Shown here: in pieces, positions 12,882 to 60,501 of the stretch
Numbering within the stretch: position 1 is the stretch's first letter
Layout: each line of letters starts with the position of its first letter
From: Octopus sinensis
Lineage: Eukaryota
DNA: 64,000 nucleotides
NCBI RefSeq assembly: GCF_006345805.1
Contig: NC_043007.1
Location: 60,512,001-60,576,000 of the forward strand
Reading direction: 5' to 3'
Program-made: the position numbers and the translations under genes
Notes under the pieces: model-generated
The model's database searches: none
Seen by the model: only the letters and a program-made list of their open reading frames with translations
Told to the model about the DNA's origin: nothing

Positions 12882-14447
12882 AATATTTTAGGTAAATTAG
12901 AAAATAGAAATATTTTTTTTAAATATGTAGAAATAAATTTAAGACAGTTTACAACTGTCTAGTAATTGTCTTGTGTTCTCTGTCTTAAGATACTCTATCT
13001 TTTATGAAACTTGCATAGTCAAAGTGAAAGTATTTTTTTTAATCTAATGCACTTATTGACAAACTTGTGTAGTTGTCACTTATTTACTGGCAATTCATAA
13101 ATTCCTTTCAAATTGATATTAGTTTGGGGACCAGCAAGGAGAATGTTTTGTGAGGCCTATTATTGTATGTCACACTTGTGGATTATGATTAAGGTCTTTG
13201 AGAAAAATTTTATAAGTAAGAATGATGTTGCTTTGGGACCCTACCTTGAAATGGATGGGATCTCCTCCTCATTAGAAATTCTCAGGGACCCCTCTTGGAT
13301 ATCCAGCCCTCAGACTGATGTACTTGTTGGATCCCCACCCTTTGTAAGTCCTTCTGATGGATGCAGGAATAGTCAAATGATCCAAAGTTTGATATTACTC
13401 TTCTACATCTTGGCAAACATAGCAGTGAGTTGTTCTAAGCTGTTTAAATGAAAATGAACAGATTAGAACTGTATGTCTTGTTTAAACTGTTGTCTTGTTT
13501 CACACTAACACCTGGTCCTTAGGCTCCTTTAATGGAGTCCACTCTGTTGCAAGCATTCAGACCAGGTCCTTGTTTTGAGAATAAAGAGTTGTGGTTTCTT
13601 CCTCCATAGTCATCACTACAATTTCTTTAACTAAACCATAAAAAGGAAATAATTGTAATATATATAAATAAAAAGGTCATATTGTTCTTGACTTCAGCAA
13701 ACTTTTTGACTGTCCATTTCAAAAATCTGCTTTAAAAGATGCTTAACAGAACATTCCCCTAACAAAATGTGCTAATAGAATCCTCTCTAACTTTTATTTT
13801 ACCAATTTAGATATGTGTGGCAAGGCACAGTCATCTCTGTTTTCTTTATTTGCATCAACAATAATTTACTCTACTCTCACACTCCACTCAGTGATCCCAG
13901 CGTTCAGTTTTTGACTAATTCAGTTGTCAAAGGTCACTAAATATTAACAAACTAATCAGGCCTGATCCAAAATGCAACTGGAAACAATTTACTTTTGAGC
14001 CAGAACCTATACTCACCCAAGTCTTCAACCTCTATCTCTCTACAGAGATTTAAAAAATGGATGTATGCAATTGTATGTCTCCATCCTGTAATCAACTTAG
14101 TAATCTCCCATTCAACACATCTAATATGATTGAATCACTTGTAAACTATCCCTTACTACACTACTTTAAATCTCTCTTCCCACCTCACTCTCATTTACAA
14201 CCACCTCAAAGGGTTACATCAATTCAGATCCATAAAAGACCATCCCATATATTTTAATGTAGCCTCTTTCTGTTGAGAACTTCAGCAAAAAAAAAAAAAA
14301 GAGAAAGAAACAATGTTGCCTTTGTTGAATGTGTGAATTTTGCTGTCCTATCTAATTATAATCCTTAAAAGAGTCAATGGTTTACTACTGTTTATATTAA
14401 AATAGTAAATTTCCTTCTGAATTTTGTTTACTTCTTTAGAATACCAA

Positions 14448-14483
14448 ATGGATCTCAGCAAGAAAGCTGTATTAATCCAATGG
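14448..14483 (+). CDS. NUMA1: NuMA-like first coding exon (exon 14440-14483, ATG 14448): MDLSKKAVLIQW
   Basis: Acceptor cttctttag at 14431-14439, donor gtgagt at 14484, phase 0. Ends in the Trp typical of CH/Hook helix 1. Confidence 0.85.
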
Positions 14484-14739
14484 GTGAGTAAGATGTATGA
14501 TTATACTTATTTTAATCCCCATCTAGTGAAAAGTTGTAGTAGCTTAGTAAGAATTCTAGGCTCAATTTTCTTGTATTTCAAATATTCTTCTCTAAATGAC
14601 ACGCGTTTCTGTTTCATATATTCTTCTTAAATACACCATCTTACCTGTTTATCTACTTGGATGAGATATTGAATCGCTAAGCTATACATGGTCATTTTCC
14701 CCAAGCCTCACCCCACATTCCCTTCCCTGTTTTCAGAGT

Positions 14740-16090
14740 TGGCACTATCATTGTAGGCAAGTCTTGTGAAATTGTAGAGATGCTTGAAAGGAGACAGGTT
14801 GATGTATGCTGCATACAAAAGTTGGCACACTGAAAGGTAGATCTAGTGAGATTGCAGAGATGCTTGAAAGGAGATGGGTTGATGTATGCTGCATACAAGA
14901 GGTAAGATGGAGAGGAACTTCAGCTAGGGTCCTCAAAGGCAAGGCACATAGGTATAAAGTCTTCTGGCAAGATAACATGGATGGAGTAAGGGGGTGTAGG
15001 CATACTCCTTGCAGAGAAATGGGTGGATAAGGTCATAGAGGTTGTCAGGGTATGCGATAGAGTGCTTAAGCTCAGGCTAGTCCTGCAGAACAGCACAGCT
15101 ACAATTATCTCTGTCTACGCCCGACAAGCAGGGCTACCAAATGATCAGAAGTCCATTTTTATGATACCCTTCTACAGGTTACTTCAAAGACGAGTGGCAA
15201 TGACCTCATCTTTGTGGCTGGAGATTTTAATGGGCATGTTGGGCGGAAATCCAGTATCTTTACTGGTGTACATGGGGGCCATGGTATTGGTTCCCGGAAC
15301 GATGAGGGAACTAGGTCACTGCAGTTCTGTGATGCATGTAACCTTTTAATCTGCAACACTAACTTCAGGAAGCTAAACAGCCACCTGATAACCTGTCAGT
15401 CAGGGGTCTCTGCTAGCCAGCGGGACGCAGGGTTGCTCTCAAAATACAAATCCCTCCCAGGTAAGGAATGCACCCCCAGCATAGACTAATCATTAGTGAC
15501 TTTTGACTCGAGACCAGGAGGATACTAAGAAGCAGACCAATCCAGTACTCTTCCAGACCTAGAGTAATGTGGTGGTGGAATAATAAGGTAGACAAAGCTA
15601 TCAGAGCAAAGAAACAGGCCTGGAAGGGCGGGGGTAGCAGTGAACTATACCAGATAGCCAAAAGAGAGGCTGGGCGACAGGTATACATAGCTAAGGGCGA
15701 AGCAGAAAGAAGTTTGCCAATGTCCAGCGACATGAGGACCAAAGAACTGAAGTATTCCAGATTGCAAGACAGTGTGTGAGAGGAAATTGTGATATCACAG
15801 GAGAGAAATGTGTCCACATGGATGATGGTGCACTTGCTTTGAATGGTTTGGAAAAGAAAGAGGCTTGGAGGAGCCATTATGAAAGAATGCTGAACATGGA
15901 GAATGAATGGGAGGAGGAGAGCCTGCCAAATGTTGATCCAGTAGAGGAACGAGCTATCCGAATAGACAACACCCTGGTAGATAAAGCAATTAAGGATATG
16001 AAGCCAGAAAAGCCCCTGGCCCATCAGGAATCACTGCTGAGTTGCTTAAAACATCTGGTGGTGTGGGCTATGGCCTAGTCACCCGTATTG
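14740..16090 (+). mobile_element. Decayed RTE LINE, endonuclease to start of RT
   Basis: Remnants VDVCCIQEVRWRG, DKVIEVVRVCDRVLKLRL, AGDFNGHVG, MWWWNNKVDKAI and KAIKDMK, with many frameshifts. About 80 bp is duplicated at its 5' end. Confidence 0.9.
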
Positions 16091-16124
16091 TAAACCAAAA
16101 CAGTCCAAAAAGCAAAATTCATTA

Positions 16125-16730: not shown

Positions 16731-16816
16731 TTGAACAAATTAAATCCTCACCTTGTCATAGAATCGCTCTCTGATTTGAGAGAAGGAGAGCAGTTTATTG
16801 CTTTATTGAACAAAAT
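16731..16816 (+). CDS. NUMA1: NuMA-like coding exon 2: LNKLNPHLVIESLSDLREGEQFIALLNK(I)
   Basis: Acceptor tcctttccag, donor gtaagt at 16817, 86 nt, phase 0 to 2. Carries the CH-domain motif I.SL.DL..G..FI.LL. Confidence 0.9.
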
Positions 16817-17107: not shown

Positions 17108-20100
17108 GTATTGTATGTTCATGAGATGAGCCAGAAGGAAAGGGCTATGATGTCAATAGTCCTGACCAGAAGAGGAAGAGAGGAAGTGAGAGAAGCAGGA
17201 GCAGGGTCATCCTCTTTTGGCTTGGTGCAGTCACCATGAATGGATGTCAGCAGAGTGAGCTAGCGGGATTGGTAGTAGCAGCTGCTAACATTAGGTGCGA
17301 TGGGTAGAGCACATGTTTTGGACTTAGTATAGTTGGACAGCCAACAAGTAGATGGGTGAACTGTAACTTATTTCCCCACATCACAATTCCCTCATACAGC
17401 AAGTTTTTTTCAGTACGTGTGTATAAATATATTTCTCCATTGTTATTGCCCCCTTCCTTGGCAGCGAAGATAAGGATCACCAGCGATGCTGTCAGACCTT
17501 TCTATAGTGAAGGAGATGTAGTGGCCTGGATCTGTAAGATCAAGGTAGTGGCCAGGCTCCAAGGCATCGATAATGTAGCAGATCTCATGGCCCTCTACCT
17601 GGAGGGAAGCGCACTGGCACTGTACTTCAAGATGGATGAGGAAGATCAAGTGGCACTGGAGGGAAGTCTATATGGAGGGAACATACACCATGTTTGCTAA
17701 GCTGGGAATGGTCAAGGGGACAGAGGAACAGGTCGATGAGTATGCCATGGAGGTTCAGAGACTGGCCATGCTATCTAGTTTTCGCAGAGAGGGTCTCGAA
17801 AAGGCAGCACATCTGGCCTTCATAAATGGCTTTCCTGGTGACATTGGTGCAACTGCTGGGCAACGAGAAAATAGCGATGAGTGAGCTCATCACTCAAGCA
17901 GGTGGAAGGCAGTAGTGATAGCAGCTGCAGAAGCCTGCAACATAGTGCAACAACCAGTAAAGAACGAAGAGGAGAAAACTGCCATGAAGTGACAGTGACC
18001 ATTCATGGGTGGGTGCTTCAAGTGTCAGGGATTGCACATGGCAAGGGACTGCACAGAGATGAAGCCCAGACCCATTTGCTACTGGTACAGGCAGGCTGGG
18101 CATATCACTCAAAATTGCAGCCAGAGAAAAGGCCACAGGGAAGTTGCTGCCTCTCAAACTTCCCCGTGTTCGAGTACAGATGCTTGTGCAGTTGCTGCCC
18201 GTAGTTGAAGTCTTGGTTGGGGAAAAGGCATTCAAAGCCCTTGTAGATATGGGCTGCGTGACATCTCTCATGACCCTAAGGGTGACAACAAAAATGGAAG
18301 GAGACAAGTAGTGTTTGGACCGTCATTGCCAGCAAAATTGGATGTAAGGGTAGCAGTGGTGGGCATAACATTGAGGCTGTGGGCGCTTGTGATTGACCAT
18401 GTGGTAGACAGAATTGATGTGGTAATGGGGTGTCAGTGTTGGTGGAGATATGGTTCCATTTGGTGGTTCAGAGGTTTCATATGCAACATGAGAGGGAGCA
18501 GAGCTCTGTGATGGGTTGTACTGCTTACACCAGTGAGGACAGAGATTTTCAGGTGGTGTTCAATGGTCAGTGGTGGATGGTAGAGTGTTGCTGGAATAGA
18601 GAGCCCTTGATGCCGAAGAACAGGCTGAGCTGCTACCAGCATACCTTGAAAGGACATACCAGGAGTGAGTTTGAAGGAAAGGTAGAGAGGTAGATTAAGG
18701 AGGGTGTCCTTATCCTGTGGAAGGAGGAGGTGGTGAGCAGAGTGCTACTACTAATGACAGCAGTGCAGCTAACAAAGGGCAATGTCAGTCCGGTACTGGA
18801 CTTTTGGGAGATGAATTGCCACATATTGTACCACACGGGTGGTGAAGTGACTGACATCTGCAGTGAGACGTTGCATGAATGGAGACAGATGACAAGGGCA
18901 GTGACGATTGTTGACTTGAAGTCAGCATATTTGCAGCTCCATGTGAGCAAGAAACTGTGATAATATCAGCTGGTGCAATATAAGGGCCAGATGTACTATT
19001 TAACTAGACTGGGTTTCAGGCTAAATTCTGTGCCAAAGATCATGGCGACAGTGCTCAAATCTATCCTGGGAAAGGTGGACAGGATCAGAAGGGCCACCAG
19101 TTCCAATATAGATGACATCTTGGAAGACGAGACTGTAGTGCCTGCCACAGAGGTTATAAGTCATCTAAAGAAGTTCGGGCTAATTGCAAAGTTCCTGGAG
19201 TCAATGGTTAGAAGAGCTGCACTGGGGCTCAAGCTTCAAAGAGATAAAACAGGCCCATTGGTGTTTTGGAAGGGGAATGAGATCCCGGAACTGGGTACCT
19301 GCATCAGCAGGAGAGAACTAGTGGGTCACTACCCAATCACAAGGTGGTTACAAACAGCATGCAGCTACATTTAGACTAGCAGATGGGGCAAACTGGGGAG
19401 ACAAAGTGGGATAGGAGACAATGGCAATGATGTGGGAGATCCTAGAGAGGACCCAGTAAGACCCAGTAAGAAAAAACTAGTATGTGCCCAAATTGGAGAA
19501 TGGGACTGTATGGTGTGATGCTAGCAGCATAGTGAGAGGTGTTTTACTGGAAATCAGAGGTGTCGAAGTGGAGGATGCGGCCTGAATTGGTGCTGAAGTG
19601 GGTAAATCTGACACTGAAATGGGGGCTGCACTCAATCAAAATCTTACTGGATGGGTAGGATCAGTGATCACTAATGAAAAGAGTATTTGAACCAAAGGGG
19701 GTTGCAGAGATGTTAGCAAAGCATTACCTAGGGTTTCTAAGAGAGCTGGCTGCCAAATTTTACTTGATGCTGAAAGGAAGGAGGCAGACATTTTGATCAA
19801 GGTGAAAAGGCCTGGTTGGCAGAGCTGGAAGATCCGAAGCAGGGAATAGCTGCAGTATGTTGGTTAAGTAACTCGGAACTAAGGACACTTCATACCATGC
19901 ATCATATGGTCATGGGTAGGACCCTGCATCTTGCCAGGAGGGTTGACACCAACGTTACTAGACAGAGCATTCAAAAGGTGGTCAGGAACTGTGACAGGTG
20001 TCAATCCAGTAACCCTGCTCTGGGTGTGCATGAGCAGGGAAACATTTCAGTAGAGCACAACTGGAAATAATTGTCAGTGAGTGTGACACACTATTGGCAG

Positions 20101-21146: not shown

Positions 21147-24100
21147 ATCATCATCATCATCATCGTTTAACGTCTGTTCTCCATGCTAGCATGGGTTGGA
21201 CGGTTCGACCAGGGATCTGGGAAGCCAGAAGGCTGCACCAGGCTCCGGTCTTATCTGGCAATGTTTCTACAGCTGAATGCCCTTCCTAACGCCAACCACT
21301 CCGTGAGTGTGGTGGGTGCTTTTTACGTGCCACCTGCACTGGAGCCAGGCAAGGCTGGTATTGGCCACGGTCGGATTGGTGCATTTTACGTGCCACCTGC
21401 ACGGAAGCCAGTCGAGGAGGCACTGGCTTCGGCCACGAATTCGGATGGTGCTTTTTACGTGCCACCGACACGGAAGCCAGTCGAGGCGGCACTGGCATCG
21501 GCCACGATTCGGATAGTGCTTTTTACGTATCTCCAGTCCAGGGGTCCTGGCATCTGCCAGGTGCCAGTCATAGGATTGGTTCAATTTCGATTCCGATTTC
21601 GATTTCACTTGCCCCAACAGGTCTTCACAAGCAAAGGGGGGTAGGCATAGGTGCCTTCACCGGATGAGGTTCGATATCGACTTCGCTTGCCTCAACAGGT
21701 CTTTGTGTGTCCAAGGGAGGAAAGGCATGCATAAGTGGGCTGGACTCACTTGTCCTGCCTGGTCTTTTCACGCACAGCATATTTCCAAAGGTCTCGGTCG
21801 CAGGTCATTTCCTCAGTGAGACCTAAAGTTCGAAGGTCGTGCTTCACCACCTCAGCCCAAGTTTTCCTGGGTCTACCTCTTCCACGGGTTCCCTCCACTG
21901 CTAGGGATTGGCATTTTTTCACACACCTATCTTCATCCATTCTCGCCACATGACCATACCAGCACAATCGTCTCTCTTGCACACCACATCTGATGCTCCT
22001 TAAGTCCAACATTTCTCTCAGGGTACTAACGCTCTGTTGAGCATGCACACTGACATTACACATCCATCGGAGCATACTGGCTTCATTTCTCGCAAGCTTA
22101 CGCATGTCCTCAGCAGTCACGGCCCATGTTTCACTGCCATGTAGCATGGCTGTTCGTACACATGCATCATACAGTCTGCCTTTTACTCTGAGCGAGAGGC
22201 CTTTAGTCACCAGCAGAGGTAAGAGCTCCCTAAACTTTGCCCAGGCTATTCTTACTCTAGCCGTTACACTTTCACCACACCCACCCCCACAACTGACTTG
22301 GTCACCAAGATAACGGAAGCTATCAACTACTTCTAGTTTTTTCCCCTGGAAAGTGACGGAAGTTGTTTTCTGCAGATTTTCAGAGGTTAATGCTCCCGAG
22401 CATCTGCCACATACAAAACTATCTTCCCAGTTAGCCTTCCTTTGACATTGCTGCACCTCTTATGTGTCCATAGCTTACACTGGGTACATCTTATAGAGTT
22501 TCTACCTACACCTTTTCTACAGATCGAGCAGGGCCATCTTCCTGAAGACATTTGTGGATTGTCTACCTTCCTACTTATTAGTACTTTGGTTTTAGCTAGG
22601 TTGACTCTAAGGCCCCTCGATTCTAGACCCTCCTTCCACACCTGGAACTTCTCCTCCAGTTCTGATAGTGACTCAGCAATTATAGCAAGGTCGTCAGCAT
22701 ATAGGAGCTCCCAGGGGCAACCTGTCTTGAATTCCTCCGTAATTGCCTGGAGGACTATGATAAATAGGAGGGGACTGAGTACTGAACCCTGGTGGACCCC
22801 AATCTCTACTTTGAATTCTTCTGTGTACATGTTGCCAACCCTAACCTTACTTACGGCATCCCTGTACATGGCTTGCACAGCTCTCACCAGCCATTCATCT
22901 ATCCCTAGTTTCCTCATTGACCACCAGATAAGGGATCGGAGGACCCTGTCAAAGGCTTTCTCCATGTCAACGAAAGCCAGGTACAGGGGCTTATCTTTGG
23001 CTAGGTATTTCTCCTGCAGCTGTCTCATCAGAAATATGGCATCAGTGCTGCTTTTCCCTGCCATGAAACCAAACTGCATCTCGTCCAAGTTGACTCTCTC
23101 CCTAATCAGTTGGGCTATGACCCTCTCTGTAACCTTCATTACCTGATCCAACAGCTTGATACCTCTGTAATTATTTGTATCTAGGGCATCTCCTTTACCT
23201 TTGTAGCAGTTGACTAGTATGCTGCTACACCAGTCATTGGGTATGACTCCTTCGTGTATCACCTGGTTAACTATACGGGTGACTAGGTTATAGCCGACAC
23301 TGCCAGATATTTTGAGCATCTCTGCAGTAATTCCTGATGGGCCTGGGGCTTTCCCTGTCTTCATGCTTCTAATTGCCTTAACTACCTTGGAACTTTCAAC
23401 TTGGATGGCTGGTCCCTCTGTTGGGTTGACATTTGGCAGACTCTCTTTATCCCATTCATTTTCTTTATTCAGCAACCTTTCATAGTGGCATCTCCAAACC
23501 TCTCTCTTTGCATCCTCATTTAGCGCAAGTGAACCATCATCCATGCGGACACATTTCTCTCCTACCACATCACGATTCTCTTTCACACACTGTCTTGCAA
23601 CACGAAATACCTCAAGTCTTTCATCCTCACGGCGCAGAACATTGGCAAATTTTTTCTTTTCCGCTTCCCCTCTGCCTAAATACACCTGTCTCCTAGCTTC
23701 CCTTCTGGCTGTCTGATACAATTCCCTGCTACCACCGTTCTTCCAGTCCCTCCAAGCCTGTTTCTTTTGTGTAATAGCCCTGTCAACCACCTTGTTCCAC
23801 CACCACATTACTCTGGGTCGAGATGGGACTTTGCTCCATCCACAGATCTGGTCAGTGGCTGTCAGCAGATTGTCCCGTAGAAATCTCCAGTTGTCTTCCA
23901 CATTAAGTGAAGCTATATCCCGTTCTATTTCGTCAAAGGCTTCGAGTAGTATGTCTCTAAATCTCTGTCCATTTGCAGGATCTTTAAGCTTCCAGACCCT
24001 TCTCCTCCAAGCTGGTCTTCTTCTGGGCAACCATTTAGCTCTGATCTTGATGTCGCTAACTACTAATCTATGTTGAGGAGTACATTCTTCGCCTGGAAAG

Positions 24101-24673
24101 GTTTTGGCATTTATAAGCAGCCCTCTTTCCCTCTTTCTGGCGAGGATGTAGTCAATCTGACTAGTGTGTCTGCCAGAACGGTAGGTGAGAGGTGGGTTTC
24201 CTGAAGTTGGTATTGCAAACCATAAGGTCATTTGCATCGCAGAACTCCAGCAGCCTGGTTCCCTCCTCATTTCGGGAGCCAAAACCGTAGCCTCCATGAA
24301 CGCCATGGAAGCCCCCGACATGCCGTCCAACATGTCCATTGAAATCACCTGCCACAAAGAGAAGGTCACTGTCATTTGTCAACAAGGTAGTCTGCAATAG
24401 GGTGTCGTAGAATTGGTCTTTCTGCGTTTCCGGTAGCCCTGCTTGAGGGGCATATGCCGAGATGATGGTAGCTGACCTATGGTGAAGCACTAATCTAATC
24501 TTAAGTACTCTATCACTTACTCTGACTACCTCGATTACCTTATCTACCCATTTCTCCGCAAGAAGTATACCCACGCCCCCGACCCCGTCAGTGTTCCCTG
24601 CCCAGAAAATCTTGTACCTGTGTTCCTTGCCTGCGAGGAGCCTAGCAGAACCTCCTCTCCACCTTACTTCAAA
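21147..24673 (-). mobile_element. Young, slightly 5'-truncated RTE LINE (APE + RT + PHD finger + 3' UTR with (GAT)n tail), two frameshifts
   Basis: ORF pieces 24161-24685, 22387-24375 and 21746-22456 carry APE motifs (ISAYAPQ, AGDFNGH, QIDYIL), RT motifs (QGSVLSPLLF, LYADD) and a C4HC3 finger. The (CAT)n run at 21147-21163 on + is the tail. Confidence 0.95.
21314..21528. repeat. ~67-bp tandem repeat in the RTE 3' UTR (3 units plus a partial unit)
   Basis: Units begin ggtgc(t/a)ttttacgtgccacc at about 21315, 21378, 21447 and 21515. Confidence 0.85.
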
Positions 24674-24824
24674 TGACTGAAACAAGTAAAAGATAAAGAA
24701 TATATTAAATTCCTTTAGTCAGTTATAGTTTTCAGAAGAGTTCAAATTTTAATGAAAGTATAGACAAGGTATCAGTGGTTTTCTAAAATATAATCTGTAA
24801 CAGTTATTCATTTGTTTTATTTAG

Positions 24825-24892
24825 AAAAGCTACTTCTTATGATGTGAATACAAAGAAAGAACGCTTTGAAATTATACAGAAGTTTATTGAGG
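24825..24892 (+). CDS. NUMA1: NuMA-like coding exon 3: (I)KATSYDVNTKKERFEIIQKFIE(D)
   Basis: Acceptor tttgttttatttag, donor gtatgt at 24893, 68 nt, phase 2 to 1. Confidence 0.85.
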
Positions 24893-26010: not shown

Positions 26011-26334
26011 GAAGTATCATATTTACTACCATAGATAAAAATGAATGTAATGAGATCAAAACACCTTTTTAATATTGATATCAAATTTTGGCACAAGGCC
26101 AGTAATTTCGGGGAAGTGGGTTAAGTTGATTACATCAATCCCAGTACTCAACTGGTTCTTATTTTATCAACCCCGAAAGAATGAAAAGCAAAGTCAACCT
26201 TGGCAGAATTTGAACTCAGAATGTGAAGATGGATGAATGTCTTTAGTTAATACTAATCCTAGATGATGATCTTCTAATTTTACTCCTTGTTCTTGCTGGC
26301 ATGACTAACTGAGAAACAATGTCTTCGTTTCTAG

Positions 26335-26402
26335 ATAAATATGATTATAAACTTGTTGAGCAAGTAAATTTTGACAAAGATAATGAACTGGATTTTGCCA
26401 AG
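26335..26402 (+). CDS. NUMA1: NuMA-like coding exon 4: (D)KYDYKLVEQVNFDKDNELDFAK
   Basis: Acceptor cttcgtttctag, donor gtaagc at 26403, 68 nt, phase 1 to 0. Confidence 0.88.
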
Positions 26403-27951: not shown

Positions 27952-28126
27952 ATTGCTGTTCTTGTGTTGGCAGCTGGGGTAAAAGGGGGACCTCAGGAAG
28001 AATTCATGAAGGCAGCACTCTCATTGAATGAGCAGTCACAATTAGAGATAATGAGCATCTTAAAGCAAGCCTTAAATCTTCCTTTATATAATTTTCAACT
28101 AGATAATCTCTTCACCCATAAACATT
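27952..28126 (+). CDS. NUMA1: NuMA-like coding exon 5: IAVLVLAAGVKGGPQEEFMKAALSLNEQSQLEIMSILKQALNLPLYNFQLDNLFTHKH(L)
   Basis: Acceptor attatttcag, donor gtgagt at 28127, 175 nt, phase 0 to 1. Encodes the C-terminal helices of the Hook domain. Confidence 0.9.
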
Positions 28127-30064: not shown

Positions 30065-30100
30065 TGGAAATCTTTGACTCAGAGAATAATGAACATTCAG
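30065..30100 (+). CDS. NUMA1: NuMA-like coding exon 6 (36-nt micro-exon): (L)EIFDSENNEHS(E)
   Basis: Acceptor ttataattttccag, donor gtcagt at 30101, phase 1 to 1, open frame. Confidence 0.72.
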
Positions 30101-34491: not shown

Positions 34492-34550
34492 AGATGCCTT
34501 GTCATGACACTTCATGGTCATCAGACAAAAGTGCAATTCATGCAAACTAT
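34492..34550 (+). CDS. NUMA1: NuMA-like coding exon 7: (E)MPCHDTSWSSDKSAIHANY
   Basis: Acceptor ccttctattgtag, donor gtaagt at 34551, 59 nt, phase 1 to 0. Sits in the linker, so it has little sequence-similarity support. Confidence 0.65.
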
Positions 34551-37500
34551 GTAAGTCTTTCAATAATTCTGATTATTTTTGTTTATTCTTTTTTTGTATA
34601 CATTCATTGAAAATGTTTCTACAATAAAGATTATTTTTAAATGCACTTTAAAAAATACTATTGTTAATTGTTATATTAGGAATATGAATGTTGTGTATGT
34701 GTGTAGATATATTGAAATTCACTAGACTATAAAGACACATTAGAAGACTTCTATAGTCACATGGAAAATATCTTTTCAATCTACACTTAGAATATGAGTT
34801 GAGCACTAGTTCTTTTTTTTTATTGCTGTTTTTGCAGATTCTCATGCTTCTCTGTCACCATACTTAAAAACTGGACACTAACCACATTTCTTTTTATCCA
34901 ACAATTGTTTTATATATTTTCCTTTTTTTTCCTTTTCCATCCAGGTTTTCCCTCTAAAATATTTCTCTGGGCCTCTCTCTCTCTATCTATTTATCTCTTC
35001 CTTCTCTTCCTTCTCATTTGCTTCCTTACTATCTTACCTCATCAGCCCATTAGTTCTTACAATACAAGAAGATGACAAGAGAAATAACTCCCCCTGCAAC
35101 CTTCACTCCATCCACAAACAAACAAAAAAAACAGCAGTACATCCCTTTTCGCTGTGGTAAAAACAATAAATGATATATTATCTAACTTTAAATTTCTTGA
35201 CTATATATACTCTGAATGAAGTGGTAGGGAAATGGTTTTTAGCAAGTTGTAATGACAGATATTTCACAACCATGCTGTCAACTTTGGAAACATAAAAAAA
35301 TGGAAAACAACAAAGCTTTTGAGCAATGTCTGGTAGTAGAAAGAAAATGGGACAGTGTTTGACATCAGCTGAAACGTCCTTGAGAATCTAGACCCTTTGC
35401 ATCCAAACCACCTCCCTCCTCACTGATTCATCCTAAACAATATCCCTTGTTCTTTTTCCCCAGAACATCATTCTCTGGAATCTCTTTCCTGCTTAGGTCT
35501 TTTCCATATGTGTTGCCCTACAACAGCTTAAACAGAACATTAATAGCATTAAATTCACTGGTCTCATGATGCCCACAAAGGTCATAGATACTGCCCCTTT
35601 CTCTAGACTTAGTAAGAAAAAAAAATCAGTCAGATCCACTTTAAAGAGAAACCTCACAAAGAAATGTGGTTAGGATTAGGGTTAACTACAGATCTTTCCA
35701 GCTCATTCTTCCTAATTTTTAAAACCGAGAAGCTAAAATTAAAAGTTTTATATTTCTGTTTTTAACTTATGTCTTGGTGGAATATTGGTAACCATATAAA
35801 GCACACACTATTATATTCCCATTTTACTTAGTAGTGCTGTTTTGCCTCTCATCTTTTTGAAATAAGTACCAGTCAAGTACTGGGATTGATGTAGCCCCTT
35901 CCCTTAAAATTTCAGGCCTTGTGGTTAAAATAGAAAGGATTGTTATTAGTCTTATCCATCATTCTCATCTTACTAACCTTCCCTCATAACTCTGCCTAGA
36001 TTCTTCACCTACTCTCCCTCCTATTCTCCTTCAGTTTTAGGGGCCACTTTAGGCTCTTAGTCTTGCAAGTTATAAGGTAATTTTCACTAGTGTTGGTACC
36101 AATGAAAAAAGTGACACTCTGTAAAATGGTTGACATTAAGAAGGGCATCCAGCTGTTGACACCATACCAAAGCAGACATTGTCCTCTCACTTGTCAAATC
36201 CTGTCAACATCATCATCATTATTATTATTATTTCTTCAAATCTTTTCTGTTTGGCTGCCACTTTTCAATTTCTTTAATTTTTGTTCCACTTGATTTCATA
36301 TTTGGTGTATTGGTGTAGTTTTGTATGGTAATCATTGACATGAAATTCATTTTCACCATAAATCAATAAATAAAGAGTTAATAGCTTTTAAAGTTTGCAA
36401 ATTTTGAGTAATTTCCATAGTAACAAGCCAAGCTGCTTACCCTTCTATTGCTGTACTATCAAGGCGCATGGTTATTTTTCACTTTTTAAATGCTTAAAAC
36501 ACAAGTTATAAGGTGGTTATGAGATGTGCTAAAAATAACAGCTAAATTAGGCCTTAAATCACACACCATAATTTTTTTTTGTTTTTGCATAATTGTATGA
36601 ATTCCTGTGTGTAGAATACAAATTTGCAAAAGTTTTTCTGAAAATTCCAAAAAATAAAAGAGTTATGAAGGGTTATATGCCGTGTATAAATCAAAATTCC
36701 ACCAGTATTTCATTTGTTTAGTTTCATATTAAAACATGCTATTTTCACAATTTTGACAACTTGTGCAATCACACACAGAATGACAGCTTCCAAATCCTGT
36801 TTTCCGACTAGGTAAAAATGATCTGTAACTTTTTTTTTAAATTTTGGGGCAAAAAGTGAATTAGCCCCTGAGATTCAGCATGGAAAATTATATCAGAAAA
36901 CCAAATTTTAAAATTTTCACTAAACTCTAAAATTTCCACAGGTGCAGCCAAACAGAAAAGATCCATAATTTCTCCTTATATTTACAGCCAGGTCACAGGC
37001 GTGTTGTTTAACTGATATAGTGGAATAGTATGCCAGTAAACCAAGATTGTAATGTGATTTTAATAACTAGTGAAGCTATTTCATCTTGTTCCTCCAAAAC
37101 TAAGTGATTAATAAATTTGGAACATTATAGCATTCTACTTCTTTTCTGTTTAGTTGAAAAAAAAATTTTAATGGGCAGTTGAGAGGCAAAAATATAGCAA
37201 CTGACTAAGTTACCTTAATCATATAGCATTTAAACTGGCCATACCCAGCTTCTCACATCTACCCTACAATTTCATTCCTGTTGTGACCAGCCTGTTATTT
37301 TTTTTTTAAATCATAGTGTCAGCAGTACAACATTATCCTTTCTTTTTGAAGACAATAAGTTATGATTTGTGGAAAATTTACCTAGTGTTTCTTGCATTTT
37401 GAGAGACTATATTGAGACTTCCTTGTTGGCTTTAGTTGAAATGTTAAATGTTGTCAGCAGCTCTGGTTCTGATAAAATTAATGCTTTGCAACATTGCTAT

Positions 37501-38010: not shown

Positions 38011-38131
38011 GAAATTAAAGAGAAAAATATACTTCTCAAGAAGTTGGACCATGAACTGGAATATGAACGACATCATTGCTTTGAATTGGAATGTAATCTC
38101 AAAGTAAACAAGAAGATTATTTCTTCAAAAG
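38011..38131 (+). CDS. NUMA1: NuMA-like coding exon 8: EIKEKNILLKKLDHELEYERHHCFELECNLKVNKKIISSK(D)
   Basis: Acceptor catgtattag, donor gtaatg at 38132, 121 nt, phase 0 to 1. Resembles the first coiled-coil segment of NuMA. Confidence 0.85.
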
Positions 38132-38619: not shown

Positions 38620-38870
38620 AGAGGAATTATTTACTAATGGTGTCACATAAAAAGCACTGGTGATGATACCATGTAAATAGCACTGGTGATGGTGCCACAT
38701 AAGCCCCCAGTACACTCTGTGGAGTGGTTGGCATTAGGAAGCCATAGAAACCAAACCAAAGCAGACTATGGAGCCTGGTGTGGCCTCTGGCCTTACCAGT
38801 TCCTATCAAGCTGTCCAGCTCATGCCAGCATGGAAAAATAGACATTAAATATTGATGATGATGATGAAAT
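38620..38870 (+). mobile_element. RTE-tail element upstream of exon 9
   Basis: aaaagcac repeats, catgccagcatggaaaa and a (GAT)n tail. Confidence 0.75.
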
Positions 38871-38961: not shown

Positions 38962-39079
38962 ATGACAAGATCCAAGAACTGAACAACCAAATTCGAGATT
39001 TGAAGAAGTTGCAAGATCAGTTAGATGACTACCACAATCTCAAAGATGAATATGACAAACTAGAGGCTACTGCTACAAG
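38962..39079 (+). CDS. NUMA1: NuMA-like coding exon 9: (D)DKIQELNNQIRDLKKLQDQLDDYHNLKDEYDKLEATAT(R)
   Basis: Long polypyrimidine acceptor, donor gtatgt at 39080, 118 nt, phase 1 to 2, heptad pattern. Confidence 0.9.
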
Positions 39080-44191: not shown

Positions 44192-44297
44192 GGTGAAAAG
44201 TCAGAGTGATGAACTAAAATCATTGAAATCAGAAAATACTTTGTTAATAAATGAGAATACCAAGTTATATGAAGAACTGAATAAAATGAAGGAGATG
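44192..44297 (+). CDS. NUMA1: NuMA-like coding exon 10: (R)VKSQSDELKSLKSENTLLINENTKLYEELNKMKEM
   Basis: Acceptor ttttctatcaccag, donor gtatgt at 44298, 106 nt, phase 2 to 0, coiled coil. Confidence 0.85.
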
Positions 44298-51200: not shown

Positions 51201-53072
51201 TTATTTACAGAGTAATTTAGTTAACTGAAAGTACTTTTTCTTTCATCCATTCAAGTGTTTTATTTAAATAAGTTACAGGTTTACCCATGATCCATCCCTG
51301 CCTCATTCGTTACTGTTGTGGAAGGATTCTGACCACCCCCATATGATTAAAAGTGGACTGTCAAATTTACTATAAATAAAGAACTGATGAGTTATTAGGA
51401 GTTGATAGGTAAGCAGCTCACTGTGAGTTATGTAACCTCATGTAACAGTAAGCCTCATGCATTCATTTAAATACTTTGTTAAATTATTTATCCAGCTTAC
51501 AAGGATATAAAAGTTACTTAAAAAGGAAATATACATATACCATGCCTCATATTTTGAACAATATCTGCAGAAGGAATAAACTTGTGGATGACATGAATTA
51601 CATATATGAAGTACAAAAACGAAATGCCAATGGATCTAAGACTTACTGGAAATGCAAAATTAAGCCTTGTAAAGCTCAAGTCCACACCATGACACATGAT
51701 GAAGGTTATACCATAATTAAGCACATTGGTGAACATCAACATAGTTCATGTGCTTCAAAACCCAAAGTTTATGAAACTTTAGCAGACCTAAAGGCACAGT
51801 AGCTGCTTCCCAGGAATCTTCTTGTTCATTAAATGTGACTGCTTATGAAAAGCTTGATGAAAATGAAATGGCTCATATGCCCTCCTCTTTGTGTGTAAGT
51901 CACAATATAAAGAAATGGCATCAAGCAAAAGTAAGTGCCCCTCCAATTCCTCAAAGTCAATTTGGTTATGAGATACCTGATGAATACAAGTTCCTTGATA
52001 GTGGCAAACTTTTCTTGCAGTTTGATAGTGGTGAAACCGATGTAGACAGATTACTTGTGTTTGCAACTTATAAAGGGCATGACTTAGTGAATGTAAAACA
52101 CTGGGTAGGTGATGGAACTTTTAAGTGCTCCCCAACTGTATTTCATGTGTTGTACAAGTGGGTTCATTCAGTGTTCTGCAATTGTTTGCATTACTTCCAA
52201 ACAAAAATCAAGAAACTTACACCTGCCTTTTTAATAAGCTAATTGAATTACATTAAGGACTGAGCCCTGAAAACATCATGATGTATTTTGAAAAAGCTCA
52301 CATTAATAGAATTTTATCTGTTTCCTAGTGCTGCTATCTCATGTTGTCTTTTTCATCTATCTCAGAACATATACAAAGAAAGTATGTGAATTTGGCTTTA
52401 AGGAAAGATACCATCATATTAATGATCTTAGCATTAAAATCAGATGTTTTTCAGCACGGGCTTTTCTTCCTCTCGATGATGTGATTGACAGATTTGAAGA
52501 TCTTGTAGAAGATGACAATCTTCCTCAAGAACTTGTGTCCTACTTTGAATTATCATGTATAGGATGCATGCAAGGTAGAGGAATTAGACAATGAAGAACT
52601 TCTTTGCTTCCTATTGATAGTTGGAATGTCTGCTTTCGAACAGAATCAGATATGCCTTGCACTAATAACCATTTAGAGGTATCATAATGCCCTACAAAGT
52701 TCTTTAACTTACACATTTTTTTAATTACTGCATTGAGAAAGGAAGAACACTTGGCGCAGCTACGAAAGGTTGAATTTGATCAAAGTGAGATTTGTGAGAC
52801 CCAAAAAAAGTATAAAGAGATAAACAAATGGCTGCAGATAATTATTGAACAATATAGTCCCGAAAATAAGATGGATTTTTTATAAGCAATAGCTCATAAC
52901 CTTCATCATTATTGAAGCTTTTAGTAATATATTTATTTTTTACTGTATTTTATATTTTATCTTTATCCAACATTTTATCAGAAGTGAAATTACCAGGAGT
53001 TACATTGACTGGCAGTCAAATTACTGGAGAATATTGGGAGTGAAATTACCAAGAGTCAAATTACTGGTTACC
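48262..53072 (+). mobile_element. MULE (Mutator-like) element with FLYWCH-type domain and decayed DDE transposase; 8-bp TSD AGATATTT
   Basis: GG...CC termini with ~100-bp subrepeat-rich TIRs (48262-48365 / 52980-53072). AGATATTT at 48254-48261 and 53073-53080. Remnants YWKCKIKPCKA...EHQH, WVGDGTFK and TNNHLE. Confidence 0.9.
48444..51144 (+). mobile_element. hAT Buster/Charlie-type element nested in the MULE; 8-bp TSD ATTTACAG
   Basis: TIRs CAGGGGTTTCCAACC / GGTTGGGAACTCCTG. ATTTACAG at 48436-48443 and 51145-51152 (central TA, as for Buster elements). Remnants ICTDGIPSM.GK, HCILHQEDL and SYLAEKGFS. Confidence 0.93.
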
Positions 53073-54243: not shown

Positions 54244-54246
54244 TTT

Positions 54247-56150: not shown

Positions 56151-56819
56151 TGCCAACTAGGCAAGGAACCTCCTACAGCCAACCTCAACTAGGAAAAGCC
56201 ATAACTGCAAACTCTTCTCCCTGTAATCTTGCAGAAGGCTCTCTTACTTGTCATTCTTCAACTCATGAAACTGTGTGCATGTGTGTGTATACACACACAC
56301 ACATATATTTTCACACATATATATGTATATCATCATCATCATCATCATCATTATCATCATTTAACGTCCTCCTTCCATGCTGGCATGGGTTGGACAGTCT
56401 GACAGAAGCTGGCAAAGCAGAAGATTGCATCCTACTTCCATGCCTGTTTTAGCATAGTTTTTATGGCTGAATGCCCTTCCTATCACTAGCCACCCCACAG
56501 AGCAGGCTGAGTGCATTTTACATGGGCAAGATCAGTTTTGGCATGATTTTTACAGCTGGATGCCCTTCCAAATGCCAACCACTTTACAGGTGTGGACTGG
56601 GTGCTTTTAAGTGGCACTAGCACTGGCAGGGTCACTAAGTAACTTTACAAGACAAGGAATCATTGAGAGGGGATGAAGCATTGGAGGAAGTGTGCTTGTG
56701 TCAGATGATGAAGGGTTAGAGTATGACAATGATCACACTCGTATAGTACTCTTAGCGCTCCACTAGCACAGACGCCAGTCTTCGAATTTGAATTCGATTT
56801 CTATATGTATGTATGTATA

Positions 56820-57997: not shown

Positions 57998-58180
57998 ATT
58001 TCAAATAAGCAGCATATTATTGAGAAGCTGACAGAAGATGCTGAACCCTTTTATGCAAAAGAATCATATTGGGAACAGACTGAAGCAAGATACAATTCAG
58101 AACTACAACAGCAAGTAAAGACTAATCCAATACACGTAGAACTTTCTAATGTAAGAATTGAGCTGGCATTAATATTGAAG
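57998..58180 (+). CDS. NUMA1: NuMA-like coding exon 11: ISNKQHIIEKLTEDAEPFYAKESYWEQTEARYNSELQQQVKTNPIHVELSN(VRIELALILK)
   Basis: Acceptor tgtctcaag, phase 0. Donor is gtcagt at 58181 or the alternative gtaaga at 58151 (both phase 0). Extra exons between 44298 and 57997 cannot be excluded. Confidence 0.72.
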
Positions 58181-59261
58181 GTCAGTGAGTTTAGGCAGGT
58201 GGATTTTTGAAAGCAAAATGTGTATTTTATTTTACAATGATTGTATTATTGAGACAAAAAATATTACTTGTGATATGTGATGGCAGCATGGAAGATATAA
58301 GCTAGCCGTTCAGAACTGCATTAAGATTATCAGCTTCACTTAAACATTTTTTTTTTGTTGGTTTACTTGTTTCGGTCATTTGACTGCAGCCAGTTGAATA
58401 AATTGACCCCAGAACTCTTTTTTTTAAAGCCTAGTACTTATACTATCACTCTGTTTTGCTGAACTGCTAAGTTACAGGGATGTAAACACACTAACACCAG
58501 TTGTCAAGCAGTGGAGTGGGGAACATGCAAACACACACACACACACACATATACATACACATGACAGGGTTCTTTCAGTTTCTGTCTACCAAATCACAAG
58601 GCTTTGGTCAGCCTGAGGTTATAGTAGAAGACATTTGCCCAAGTTGCTACACAGTGGGACTGAACCCAGAATCATGTGATTGGAAAGCAACTTTCTTACC
58701 ACACAGCCAAATCTGTGCCTATTTGTAATATGGTTTCAAAATTTTCATTACTTGTAACTGTGACTGGAAATTCTACTGCATATCATATTTTTGATTTATT
58801 TTCTTCAAAGTCTTATCATGTAATGATTCCCTTCTAACATATATTTAACCCTTTAGTATTCAGATTGCTCTGTCAAATGTAATGCTTATTTATTCATATT
58901 GTTTTTAATTAATCATGCATTATCCTATAGCTTTGTGATTTGGATGATATGAATGTTATTTTCAGAAAGTCATTGTAGGATGGGTGTAAGAGGCTGCGTC
59001 TGACCTGTTTGGACTTAAAACAGGTAGAAAATTTTGGCCAATTTAAATACTAAAGGGTTAATAGATATGAAAATGTATTTGTATGATTGTCATAGATGTG
59101 GCTGTGTGGTCAAGAAGGTTGCTCCCCAACCACCTGATATCAGATTCAGTTCCACCTTGTGGTATCTTGGGCAAGTGTCTTCTATTTCTAGGCCAACTGA
59201 AGCCTTGGAAGAGAATTAAGTAGCTGGTAACTGAAATAAGACTGTCGTGTGTGAATATACG

Positions 59262-59415
59262 TGTGTGTGTGTGTGTATGTATACATACATACACATACAC
59301 ATATGGATGTATGTGTGTGTGTGTGTATGTATACATACATACACATACACATATGGATGTATGTGTTTGTGTATGTATACATACATACATACACATACAC
59401 ACACATATGTATGTG
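59262..59415. repeat. Compound minisatellite (~46-bp unit x3) built from (TG)/(CA) microsatellite
   Basis: Unit gtgtgtatgtatacatacatacacatacacatatggatgtat. Confidence 0.8.
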
Positions 59416-59894
59416 TGTGTGTGTGTTTACATTTGTGTTCTAAAAGTTACAAGCTACAAATGGTGTTGCTGTCACTGCTCTTGTCAACAAATCATTGATT
59501 TGTTTCATTTCTCCATAGACATGTGAAATAAAAAAATCCATTACTTAAAAACAAAAAAAAGAAAAGTTTGGATTAGTGATAGGGGAGGCATCCAGGATCC
59601 AATAATATATTCAACTCACTCATGCTAGCATGAAAAATAGATGTAAAAGTGAAAGGACAAATAACATACTCAAGCCAATATTGTATGGCTGGATACATAT
59701 ATTTTTGCTACTCTTCGAGTTCTCCCATTTTAAAAATTTAACAAGCAGACAGTTGTGTGTCTTATATAAGAGTAAATATTATGTTTATACCAAAATTTGA
59801 TTCTATTTCTCTCTAGTAAAGTATCCCAGTCATAGACATCAACAATTATTTAATGCTAACTTATAATGATTTTCTTTTTCTTTTTTTTTTTAAG

Positions 59895-60501
59895 AAAATG
59901 GTTAATTTTGCACAGAACTTGGAAAGGAATAAAAAAACTCAGAATAAGATGTTTGGCTCTGAAATATCTACTCTGAGACAAAAAGCTAAAAGTTATATTG
60001 AAATGAAATCAGAAAAAGAAAAATTTTCTATAAAACTACCAAAACAAGAAGAGATGCTGCTAGATTATGAAAATAGTTTGCTTAAAAAACAAGAGTTGGA
60101 ATACCAACTTGAAAGTGAACAAAGGCTTTGTAAAAACTTGAGAGAAAAGATAAAAGTGGGGTCTGAAGAAAATCAATCGCTTATGAAACAATTAAAACAA
60201 CTCCAAAACCTTTATAATAGTTTGCAAAAGCGAAATGATATGCTAAACAACAAGTGCATCAAAACACAGAACCAGCTTAGTTTGAAAGAGAAGAAATGTA
60301 CTGAATTTGAAAAGAAGCTTGCCAGAATGGCAGTAGAAAAATTGACTATGGAAAAACGGTATGTAAATGAATTGGAGCAACCTCGACAAACTTTGTCTCA
60401 AAAGTTGAAAGAAAATATTGATCCATTTGAAAAACAAAATAAAGGAATAAAAGCTGACCAAGATGACAATGAGATGAAAAGAGACTTCACTTGCATAAAT
60501 G
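59895..60501 (+). CDS. NUMA1: NuMA-like coding exon 12: 202-codon coiled-coil exon (KMVNFAQNLERNKK...DFTCIN(G))
   Basis: T-rich acceptor ending taag at 59894, inside ORF 59853-60515, donor gtaatt at 60502, E/K/L/Q-rich heptads. Confidence 0.88.

Follow-up and report, generated by a model that had tools for sequence, protein, structure and literature searches.

Hook-domain proteins and the octopus locus

NuMA connects the dynein motor with the mitotic spindle. Its functional counterparts in spindle positioning are Mud in Drosophila and LIN-5 in C. elegans. LIN-5 is a short protein that is not known to have a recognisable Hook domain. The HOOK1-3 and CCDC88A-C proteins share a Hook (CH-like) fold in front of a dimeric coiled coil and activate dynein-dynactin by means of the latter, but they form a separate Hook subfamily (Pfam PF19047), below whose cut-off the octopus protein described here scores. 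A dynein-dynactin-NuMA complex has been reported (bioRxiv 10.1101/2024.11.26.625568). InterPro places a Hook domain at the start of Mud (PMC12505299), and the view of fly Mud as very divergent, which formed part of the original prediction, was therefore overstated.

The window analysed is a 64,000-nt stretch of Octopus sinensis DNA. Judging from its sequence, we put the probability at roughly 87% that bases 14440-60501 carry the 5′ part of a NuMA/Mud orthologue, with 554 codons in its first 12 coding exons. The locus would then be an ordinary conserved gene of a known family. It is hard to spot because the exons make up less than 4% (3.6%) of a 46-kb stretch packed with mobile elements. The introns contain a non-LTR retrotransposon, mariner-type transposase remnants, an integrase fragment and a FLYWCH zinc-finger ORF, in agreement with their earlier description as filled with transposable elements. 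There are also hAT-like ORFs, which were judged by eye and have no Pfam transposase match.

Exon chain

Rebuilding the gene from the sequence gave a 12-exon, 554-aa model identical to the one first proposed, in which small exons with matching phases splice into a single frame. All 11 introns are GT-AG, and the exon end phases (0,2,1,0,1,1,0,1,2,0,0,1) are all compatible. The spliced coding sequence of 1663 nt corresponds to 554 codons plus one base without a stop, the frame remaining open up to 60501. As far as sequence can establish it, the twelve small exons are confirmed as real.

All exons lie on the forward strand. In the first coding exon (14440..14483), the ATG lies at 14448 and the encoded peptide is MDLSKKAVLIQW; this exon, whose end phase is 0, has acceptor ttag/AATACC and donor TGG/gtgagt (slashes mark splice junctions). 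Because an acceptor precedes this ATG, there should be at least one 5′ UTR exon further upstream. The Hook domain continues through exon 2 (16731..16816, 86 nt, phase 0 to 2; LNKLNPHLVIESLSDLREGEQFIALLNK) and exon 3 (24825..24892, 68 nt, phase 2 to 1; KATSYDVNTKKERFEIIQKFIE). Exon 4 (26335..26402, 68 nt, phase 1 to 0) has ...NELDFAK as its last residues, and exon 5 (27952..28126, 175 nt, phase 0 to 1) supplies the final Hook helices (IAVLVLAAGVKGGPQEEF...SILKQAL...FTHKH).

Beyond a linker, the coiled coil begins in exon 8 (38011..38131, 121 nt, phase 0 to 1; LLKKLDHELEYERHHCFELECNLKVNKKIISSK) and runs through exon 9 (38962..39079, 118 nt, phase 1 to 2) and exon 10 (44192..44297, 106 nt, phase 2 to 0). 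Exon 11 (57998..58180, 183 nt, phase 0 to 0), which has a weak acceptor (ctcaag/), completes the first coiled-coil block and then carries a two-proline break. A second block occupies exon 12 (59895..60501, 607 nt, phase 0 to 1). This exon terminates at an open and usable donor, ATG/gtaatt, and the end of the model is thus a donor rather than a stop.

Hook domain and family assignment

Four splice junctions fall within the sequence that encodes residues 1-144. These residues match the Pfam family HOOK_N_NuMA (PF21670) at 42.1 bits (E=9.4e-11), 15 bits above its cut-off of 27, which bears out the CH/Hook-fold pattern previously noted in the first ~144 aa. This match is lost when the entire 554-aa product is scanned. 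Against a profile of 18 NuMA proteins from which the octopus sequence was left out, the same residues score 58-63 bits, and shuffling them never gives more than 5 bits. The octopus total with this profile is 91.2 bits (Hook 62.8, coiled coil 41.6). An hhalign comparison with a 16-sequence amniote NuMA alignment is collinear over aa 5-234, with a probability of 93% and E=3.1e-7. Identity to vertebrate NuMA is ~25% over 223 aligned columns. Three motifs that had suggested NuMA also find their partners in these alignments. ELDFAK aligns with NuMA ELELAK, the ILK.AL motif (octopus SILKQAL) with VILKFVL, and the ER...ELE..L..NKK...KD motif (octopus ERHHCFELECNLKVNKKIISSKD) with ERSNRDELELELAENRKLLTEKD.

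Membership in the HOOK or CCDC88 (Girdin/Daple) family, whose proteins likewise combine an N-terminal Hook domain with a coiled coil, is disfavoured and would be extremely surprising. The fold is common to both groups, but the HOOK/CCDC88-type Pfam family HOOK_N gives only a partial match (aa 80-123) of 15.2 bits, below its cut-off of 23.5. A profile of the octopus and four invertebrate Hook domains retrieves human NuMA from the PDB (6QJA, the vertebrate Hook-domain reference structure) at 71.8 bits; HOOK1 and HOOK3 come second at ~41.5 bits, 30 bits worse, and alpha-actinin CH domains follow at ~22 bits. With the octopus sequence alone, NuMA (E=0.39) and HOOK3 (E=1.1) are barely separated. 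The octopus segment LVLAAGVKGG resembles the LGCAV motif of HOOK and Girdin; the invertebrate NuMA-like proteins discussed below have LLLCAAVQ where octopus has LVLAAGVK. However, no match to the HOOK coiled-coil family was found in the octopus product, and the nearest relatives bear NuMA tails. The alignment of the coiled coil is specific to NuMA CC1 and extends to an intron at K/D and a 118-nt exon. The earlier assignment to NuMA rather than to HOOK or CCDC88 therefore stands, and the twelve exons encode the front third of octopus NuMA.

Coiled coil and proposed function

As in vertebrate NuMA, a NuMA-type Hook domain is followed by a linker and then by a coiled coil, as had been predicted for the remainder of the protein. 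The heptad a/d hydrophobic contrast of residues 177-554 is 0.44, compared with 0.275 +/- 0.024 (maximum 0.355) in 200 shuffles, which is ~6.8 sd above them, and the heptad register is continuous over the exon 8/9 and 10/11 junctions. The coiled coil scores ~39-41.6 bits with the NuMA profile, whereas 300 composition-matched shuffles have a mean of -25.8 and do not exceed -10.3. Reversing the sequence gives -3.2.

Exon 8 aligns with the HBS1/acidic-patch region of NuMA. The coiled coil opens with the pattern (L)KK.L..ER...ELE..L...[KR]K.....KD..I that is also present in vertebrates (human RRLKKQLADERSNRDELELELAENRKLLTEKDAQI). Exon 10 falls within the 39-bit profile match, as do the first ~40 residues of exon 11, including an aligned Trp (SYWEQ with QEWLE). 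Vertebrate NuMA also has a proline-containing break ahead of its second coiled coil. Exon 12 aligns approximately with human residues 385-560 rather than with the giant coiled-coil exon of vertebrates. Its G373 occupies the position of the G conserved in the GE[SV][LM]G motif of NuMA orthologues, and it contains a degenerate candidate Spindly-like site, MFGSEISTLRQ, in which octopus GSEISTL stands against GEVLGDVL in vertebrate NuMA.

By homology, the presumably expressed gene would produce a dimeric protein that recruits and activates dynein-dynactin via its N-terminal module. The Hook domain (aa 1 to ~144), whose human counterpart binds the dynein light intermediate chain, would be joined by a short, poorly conserved linker to a first coiled coil that aligns with HBS1/CC1a-CC1b, the part of human NuMA that runs along dynactin and touches the dynein heavy chain. 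After the proline break, the second coiled coil starts near the Spindly-like site. A C-terminal tail encoded outside the window would anchor the protein to the minus ends of microtubules and, at the cortex, to the LGN/Pins complex.

Tentative linker exons

Exon 6 (30065..30100, 36 nt, phase 1 to 1; EIFDSENNEHS) and exon 7 (34492..34550, 59 nt, phase 1 to 0; MPCHDTSWSSDKSAIHANY) are tentative. The phases of exons 5 and 8 demand at least one intervening phase 1-to-0 exon. Exon 7 is the top-scoring candidate of this kind between them, and exons 6 and 7 are the top-scoring splice-compatible pair. Exon 6 has good splice signals (ttttccag/ ... CAG/gtcagt), a compatible phase and at most a faint EEHSP-like hhalign match. 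Comparison with NuMA revealed no homology support for either exon, and splice signals are the sole basis for predicting them. Absent from the octopus linker model is the SP...SP...[ST]P motif, which occurs in all other NuMA linkers compared, as an SP..SP..TP cluster in vertebrates and as SP...SP...SP in the invertebrate proteins.

Another candidate on the forward strand (36942..36991, 50 nt, phase 1 to 0; AAKQKRSIISPYIYSQ) could replace exon 7, as the two are mutually exclusive in frame. At the position of a conserved proline that marks where the coiled coil begins, its SPYIYSQ is similar to SPYMVSK of the urchin. This resemblance is at chance level (rank 9 of 5452 windows, with ~0.6 such windows with a following GT expected), and its donor, CAG/gtcaca, is weak.

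Invertebrate relatives and the 3′ end of the gene

The best matches among 193 retrieved proteins (E ~1e-13) are from the crinoid Anneissia japonica (XP_033127150.1, 1645 aa, 39.5 bits), annotated as 'nuclear mitotic apparatus protein 1-like', and the horseshoe crab Tachypleus tridentatus (XP_076344891.1, 743 aa, 38.5 bits). Together with invertebrate NuMA-like proteins from the urchin Lytechinus pictus (XP_054755212.1, 1781 aa, named 'trichohyalin-like') and the hemichordate Ptychodera flava (XP_070553993.1, 1325 aa), they are the closest sequences found, with 21-30% Hook-domain identity to octopus. They share with octopus a G-centred motif that opens the second coiled coil and an extension of ~11 residues before the KKL block, which vertebrates lack. 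Querying a protein collection of 5.8 billion clusters with the octopus protein gave no match, and the model is therefore unconfirmed by any close relative.

The three deuterostome proteins have an NLM-type tail with the NuMA motifs DW.RI.EL..RN..C.PHL and RRES.A[FY]S[IV], the latter aligning with human RRQSMAFSI. The octopus window does not include the tail region or the >1000-aa central coiled coil of vertebrate NuMA. No NuMA tail was found on either strand of the whole 64-kb window (best E=4), and no convincing further exon was seen in 60502-64000.

This raises the unlikely alternative that the gene encodes a tail-less Hook and coiled-coil adaptor of ~554-558 aa, either a NuMA-derived paralogue or a short isoform, which ends at or just after exon 12 and engages dynein-dynactin without its own microtubule or LGN anchor. 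Reading through the exon 12 donor would add the four residues GNFS before a stop codon at 60513-60515, and AATAAA signals are present at 61206 and 61995. The horseshoe-crab relative is also annotated as ending inside the coiled coil, and flies have tip-less Mud isoforms (PMC12505299). However, the exon 12 donor is usable, the nearest poly(A) signal is ~700 nt beyond the stop, the crinoid, urchin and hemichordate orthologues of 1325-1781 aa retain the tail, and collinearity with human NuMA extends to just ~residue 560 of 2115. Because introns in this gene reach 13.7 kb, a next exon past base 64000 would be unremarkable. The gene most likely continues beyond this base, with tail exons predicted further downstream. 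The earlier suggestion of a shorter spindle adaptor, drawn from the length of the 607-nt exon, is not supported.

Intron positions

The NUMA1 exons of two birds and a mammal were mapped on genomic DNA. Six intron positions are shared with octopus, five of them exactly (introns 1, 2, 3, 4 and 8, with the alignment column and phase of bird and/or mammal NUMA1), and intron 5 lies 1-2 columns off a vertebrate intron of identical phase. Intron 1 (after W) matches bird intron 1, and intron 2 (phase 2, in an Ile codon) has the same column in birds, with which the mammalian read-through ORF P0051 agrees. Bird and mammal both share intron 3 (phase 1, column 72), intron 4 (phase 0, after ...AK, column 101) and intron 8 (phase 1, in the Asp codon following K, column 265). 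In Calcarius and in a mammalian scaffold (L003), the homologue of exon 9 likewise measures exactly 118 nt and runs from phase 1 to phase 2, and this length is identical in all three vertebrates mapped. The NUMA1 structure given in the original prediction was accurate: genomic DNA gives 0,2,1,0 as the first four phases, an intron directly after ...LAK (octopus FAK), a phase-1 intron in the D codon following K, and a 118-nt, phase 1-to-2 exon after it.

A further alternative is that the locus is decaying or not expressed, as a pseudogene or a partial duplicate would be, or that splice sites chosen to fit a frame make part of the model artefactual. The lack of any identical or closely related protein among the 5.8 billion clusters is consistent with this, and independent support for exons 6, 7 and 11 is weak or none. 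Even so, we consider it very improbable. The reading frame is open in all 12 exons, their splice sites are canonical, and the retained introns mean that this is no processed copy. Profile matches and conserved intron positions cannot arise from frame-fitting, and nine exons are therefore validated.

The octopus gene also departs from the vertebrate structure. Vertebrate introns 5, 7 and 12 are missing, and octopus introns 6, 7 and 11 are unique, the one 3′ of exon 11 being absent from vertebrates. Exon 5 corresponds to fused vertebrate exons 5 and 6 (81+85 or 81+88 nt, likewise phase 0 to 1). The counterpart of the 106-nt exon 10 is 118 nt with identical phases, and the 607-nt exon 12 is represented, at least at its 5′ end, by small vertebrate exons (bird exon 12 is 123 nt).

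Gene model

There are twelve exons in the octopus gene model, and all of them lie on the + strand, where open stretches were searched for and a simple splice-site score was then applied. They are located at 14440-14483 (exon 1, with the ATG at 14448), 16731-16816 (exon 2), 24825-24892 (exon 3), 26335-26402 (exon 4), 27952-28126 (exon 5), 30065-30100 (exon 6), 34492-34550 (exon 7), 38011-38131 (exon 8), 38962-39079 (exon 9), 44192-44297 (exon 10), 57998-58180 (exon 11) and 59895-60501 (exon 12), and they end in phases 0, 2, 1, 0, 1, 1, 0, 1, 2, 0, 0 and 1, respectively. The chain had been proposed from the sequence alone, and the twelve rebuilt exons match that proposal exactly. Every intron is of the GT-AG type, and the spliced frame runs through 554 codons without a stop, leaving a single extra base ahead of the final donor.

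Exonic sequence accounts for 3.6% of the 46 kb covered by the model, the introns range from 830 to 13,700 nt, and the surrounding window is AT-rich (GC 33-48%) with abundant mobile-element ORFs. For nine of the twelve exons the chain amounts to more than the fitting together of reading frames. We consider the 554-residue product to be the 5' part of a NuMA/Mud orthologue, and we assign this reading a probability of roughly 0.87.

Hook domain

Residues 1-144, which are encoded by exons 1-5 across four junctions, match the NuMA-type Hook family PF21670 with E=9.4e-11 and 42.1 bits (curated cut-off 27), wherein aa 5-124 align to profile positions 3-130 of 152. This is the best Pfam family in the forward direction, and the domain scores 58-63 bits against our own NuMA profile. 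A Hook profile built from the octopus and four invertebrate sequences was also compared with the PDB. The human NuMA Hook structure 6QJA (71.8 bits) and the NuMA construct 9HHL (68.4 bits) rank well above HOOK1/HOOK3 (~41.5 bits) and the CH domains of alpha-actinin (~22 bits).

One possibility is that the product instead belongs to the HOOK or CCDC88 proteins. The corresponding N-terminal model, PF19047, reaches only 15.2 bits (cut-off 23.5) with a match confined to aa 80-123, the HOOK coiled-coil region PF05622 is unmatched, and HOOK1/3 fall 30 bits under NuMA in the PDB profile search. Thus, HOOK and CCDC88 are rejected because the profile, PDB and Pfam family tests all favour NuMA, as the original prediction had proposed.

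A Pfam scan of the whole 554-aa product reports no Hook-domain match, unlike the scan of aa 1-144 alone, and none is reported for the NuMA orthologues of urchin and hemichordate at full length. We suspect that the long coiled coil triggers the bias correction of HMMER and thereby hides the Hook match. The urchin and hemichordate proteins carry the RefSeq names 'trichohyalin-like' or 'uncharacterized', and Pfam misses on full-length sequences may lie behind these names.

Assignment to the NuMA family

A query comprising human NuMA residues 1-268, which agrees with the 6QJA alignment, retrieved 53 N-terminal NuMA fragments from amniotes. When a profile of 16 amniote fragments was compared with 1.84 billion representatives, there were 231 matches, and the best 150 of these include full-length NuMA from fishes, sharks and lampreys along with four invertebrate proteins. 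Among the matches listed, these four are from a crinoid (XP_033127150, named 'nuclear mitotic apparatus protein 1-like'), a horseshoe crab (XP_076344891), a sea urchin (XP_054755212) and a hemichordate (XP_070553993). Among the 193 proteins listed as matches to NuMA queries, the octopus product is nearest to those of the crinoid (39.5 bits) and the horseshoe crab (38.5 bits), with domain E values of ~1e-13.

The three proteins from deuterostome invertebrates carry a NuMA tail that includes the NLM-type motif DW.RI.EL..RN..C.PHL and, at the terminus, RRES.A[FY]S[IV]. The crinoid, urchin and hemichordate proteins are true NuMA orthologues because these tail motifs are present.

An 18-sequence NuMA profile, from which the octopus sequence and the human query sequence were left out, gives the octopus product 91.2 bits, the Hook domain alone 62.8 and the coiled coil alone 41.6. 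In control searches of the coiled coil with the same profile, 300 composition-preserving shuffles score -25.8 on average and -10.3 at most, and the reversed sequence scores -3.2. The strong scores needed the added invertebrate sequences, as an amniote-only profile yields just ~12 bits per octopus region. Because MAFFT misplaced the octopus exons when they were entered as single rows in a NuMA alignment, the search of the representatives used an amniote-only alignment. Against the amniote alignment, hhalign gives 93% probability and E=3.1e-7 over aa 5-234.

Intron positions shared with NUMA1

Intron positions in octopus, bird and mammal were placed on an independent NuMA profile, in a comparison that covers NUMA1 genes only. 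The bird structure was obtained by mapping annotated NuMA fragments on genomic contigs of Todus and Calcarius, and exons 3-11 of the mammalian gene were rebuilt on a mammalian scaffold from a metagenome. The coding exons of Calcarius measure 42, 89, 80, 83, 81, 85, 127, 176, 118, 118 and 141 nt with end phases 0, 2, 1, 0, 0, 1, 2, 1, 2, 0 and 0, and those of the mammal measure 80, 83, 81, 88, 121, 158, 118, 118 and 141 nt with the same phases.

Octopus introns 1, 2, 3, 4 and 8 share both the exact column and the phase with vertebrate introns. For octopus intron 5, the nearest equivalent is vertebrate intron 6, which has the same phase and is offset by 1-2 columns, and octopus exon 5 (175 nt) corresponds to vertebrate exons 5 and 6 together (166-169 nt). 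In octopus and in all three vertebrates, exon 9 measures 118 nt and runs from phase 1 to phase 2. Exon 10 has equal phases and measures 106 nt in octopus versus 118 nt, a difference that is taken up by a 4-residue gap, and the phases of exon 11 also equal those of its vertebrate counterpart. Introns 5, 7 and 12 of vertebrate NUMA1 are not matched in octopus, and introns 6, 7 and 11 of the octopus gene are not matched in vertebrates.

Four features of NUMA1 had been cited in support of the gene model, and all four are correct. The phases 0, 2, 1, 0 proved correct in the bird genomic mapping, the introns after ...AK and inside K-D were recovered in the NUMA1 genomic mapping, and the 118-nt phase 1-to-2 exon is present in two birds and the mammal. 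The K-D intron and this exon both belong to the coiled-coil part, whose alignment is specific to NuMA.

Intron positions are also visible in retrieved 'proteins' that are ORFs reading through mammalian NUMA1 introns. In a mammalian NuMA transcript (Logan contig DRR415793_7213), an intron is retained after ...FEYKIQ and serves as an intron marker, wherein a 160-aa ORF is followed by a 1716-aa NuMA ORF.

Linker

Exons 6 and 7 encode a tentative linker of 32 residues, and the whole basis for their inclusion is the presence of good splice signals and the need for a phase 1-to-0 exon between exons 5 and 8. In every other NuMA there is an SP...SP...[ST]P cluster that ends at the proline opening the coiled coil (P212 in human), whereas the modelled octopus linker contains no SP or TP. 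The introns that separate exons 5 to 8 were scanned for the motif with a profile and by 10-mer similarity, and neither scan rose above chance level. An alternative exon of 50 nt at 36942-36991 (..SIISPYIYSQ, followed by gt) resembles the urchin sequence ..LINSPYMVSK and would contribute one SP, but it is statistically indistinguishable from chance. Most likely, the missing SP/TP cluster reflects an uncertain exon model and not the protein itself.

Coiled coil and candidate Spindly-type site

The heptad pattern of aa 177-554 has a best-register a/d hydrophobic contrast of 0.44, versus 0.275 +/- 0.024 in 200 shuffles (maximum 0.355), and its register carries on from exon 8 into exon 9 and from exon 10 into exon 11. 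The heptads are interrupted at about aa 300-336, a stretch with two prolines. The NuMA profile matches aa 185-332 (39.4 bits, E=1.4e-14), which takes in exons 8-10 and exon 11 for the initial two-thirds of its length. Located directly after the linker, this coiled coil is collinear with NuMA CC1a/CC1b (the HBS1 and acidic-patch region), and the hhalign match to the amniote NuMA alignment spans the same CC1 block. When the octopus coiled coil was compared with the PDB, NuMA was not among the matches.

In the multiple alignment, MFGSEISTLRQ is located opposite the GE[SV][LM]G.[ILV] of all orthologues (the human Spindly-type residues E407, L409 and L413). The octopus site is degenerate: it retains the G and two hydrophobic positions, has its E displaced by one and has lost the second G.

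In human NuMA, the start of the coiled coil touches the dynein heavy chain through the conserved P212/Q215 and an acidic patch at 231-240, and a fragment comprising residues 1-505 is enough to recruit dynein to the cortex of human cells (PMC8047419; bioRxiv 10.1101/2024.11.26.625568). The 554 octopus residues correspond to approximately 1-560 of human NuMA and cover the equivalent of 1-505. By analogy, the octopus sequence LLKKLDHELEYERHHCFELECNL at the start of the coiled coil would contact the dynein heavy chain, and the coiled coil would extend along dynactin. Perhaps, past the break, the candidate Spindly-type site contacts the pointed end.

The 3' end of the gene

No exon candidates were found in the 3.5 kb past exon 12 (60502-64000), and a profile of 20 NuMA C-termini run against the six frames of the window has a best E of 4 and reveals no tail (NLM, LGN/Pins-binding or microtubule-binding). 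Reading through the last donor adds GNFS before a stop at 60513-60515, and the nearest AATAAA is ~700 nt beyond. These features would suit the idea, raised in the original prediction, that the locus encodes a shorter spindle adaptor. This idea is unlikely and is not supported. Introns of up to 13.7 kb occur in this gene, and orthologues from other invertebrates are 1325-1781 aa long, so the octopus gene most probably continues past the window.

Ancestry and annotation of the NuMA module

The NuMA/Mud/LIN-5 proteins connect cortical polarity cues to spindle-pulling dynein, and in spiralians, molluscs among them, the body plan arises through stereotyped oriented cleavages. A literature search for molluscan NuMA returned no paper mentioning molluscs. 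If current gene sets do miss or truncate this NuMA orthologue, as considered below, it would be the first defined NuMA for spiralian embryology. Its N-terminal module offers a cephalopod starting point for raising antibodies, designing in-situ probes and assaying dynein in vitro.

On the same condition, the dynein-activating Hook-HBS1-Spindly module would be shown to have been present, with most of its intron positions, in the ancestor of bilaterians. That the module is ancient is not in itself new, as a Hook domain is already documented in fly Mud (PMC12505299). Public protein sets of echinoderms, hemichordates and one chelicerate already include NuMA orthologues with a Hook domain, and the octopus gene is a newly added member of this known family. 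The comparison adds to the existing evidence that bilaterians inherited the Hook domain, the beginning of the coiled coil and most 5' intron positions from their common ancestor.

Queries of a 5.8-billion-cluster protein collection, which contains echinoderm, hemichordate and chelicerate proteins from RefSeq, gave no matches with either the octopus coiled coil or the Hook domain. This result, along with the silence of Pfam on full-length sequences, causes us to raise an annotation gap as a tentative idea, one we would not favour, in which the NuMA orthologue is missed or truncated in current cephalopod, and possibly all molluscan, gene sets. Exons of 36-183 nt are readily overlooked when they are dispersed among mobile elements across 46 kb, and full-length scans of coiled-coil proteins can leave a Hook domain unreported.

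Mobile elements and repeats

Intron 2 contains a non-LTR retrotransposon at 21746-24685 (-), with an open reverse-transcriptase ORF of 662 aa (RVT_1, E=1e-29) and a fragment of an endonuclease-type ORF. Older, diverged non-LTR copies that are 68-76% identical are found in intron 1 (14899-16097), in intron 6 (30509-31005) and upstream of the gene (217-913). Also in intron 2 is a GC-rich block at 17356-19374 (+) with a GC content of 0.43-0.48 and several ORFs, one of which (18973-19374) resembles, by eye, a polymerase fragment of an LTR retroelement. An integrase core fragment of an LTR-type element (rve, E=1e-15) is located in intron 9 at 39941-40282 (-).

Upstream of the NuMA gene, two overlapping ORFs at 4624-5824 (+) match a PIF1-like helicase and Pif1 2B (E=2e-17 and 4e-13), and this region looks like a Helitron-type element. 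A mariner-type transposase remnant occupies 32651-33540 (+) in intron 6 (Transposase_1, E=4e-17 at 32934-33323), and a second, judged by eye, lies in intron 5 at 28799-29650 (+). A run of ORFs in intron 10, at 49121-50567 (+) and 51476-52242 (+), resembles a hAT-type transposase by eye. Its only Pfam match, Gtr1_RagA at 23.7 bits, is marginal and probably spurious, and an ORF beside the run carries a FLYWCH zinc finger (E=4.5e-6).

There are at least six copies of an interspersed repeat of ~120 bp, in both orientations and with 73-89% identity, located at ~60766-60890, 21147-21270, 25900-26012, 27832-27879, 38742-38867 and 56341-56394. Its translation, ...PCWHGLD...LPNANHS..., recurs in the list of ORFs.
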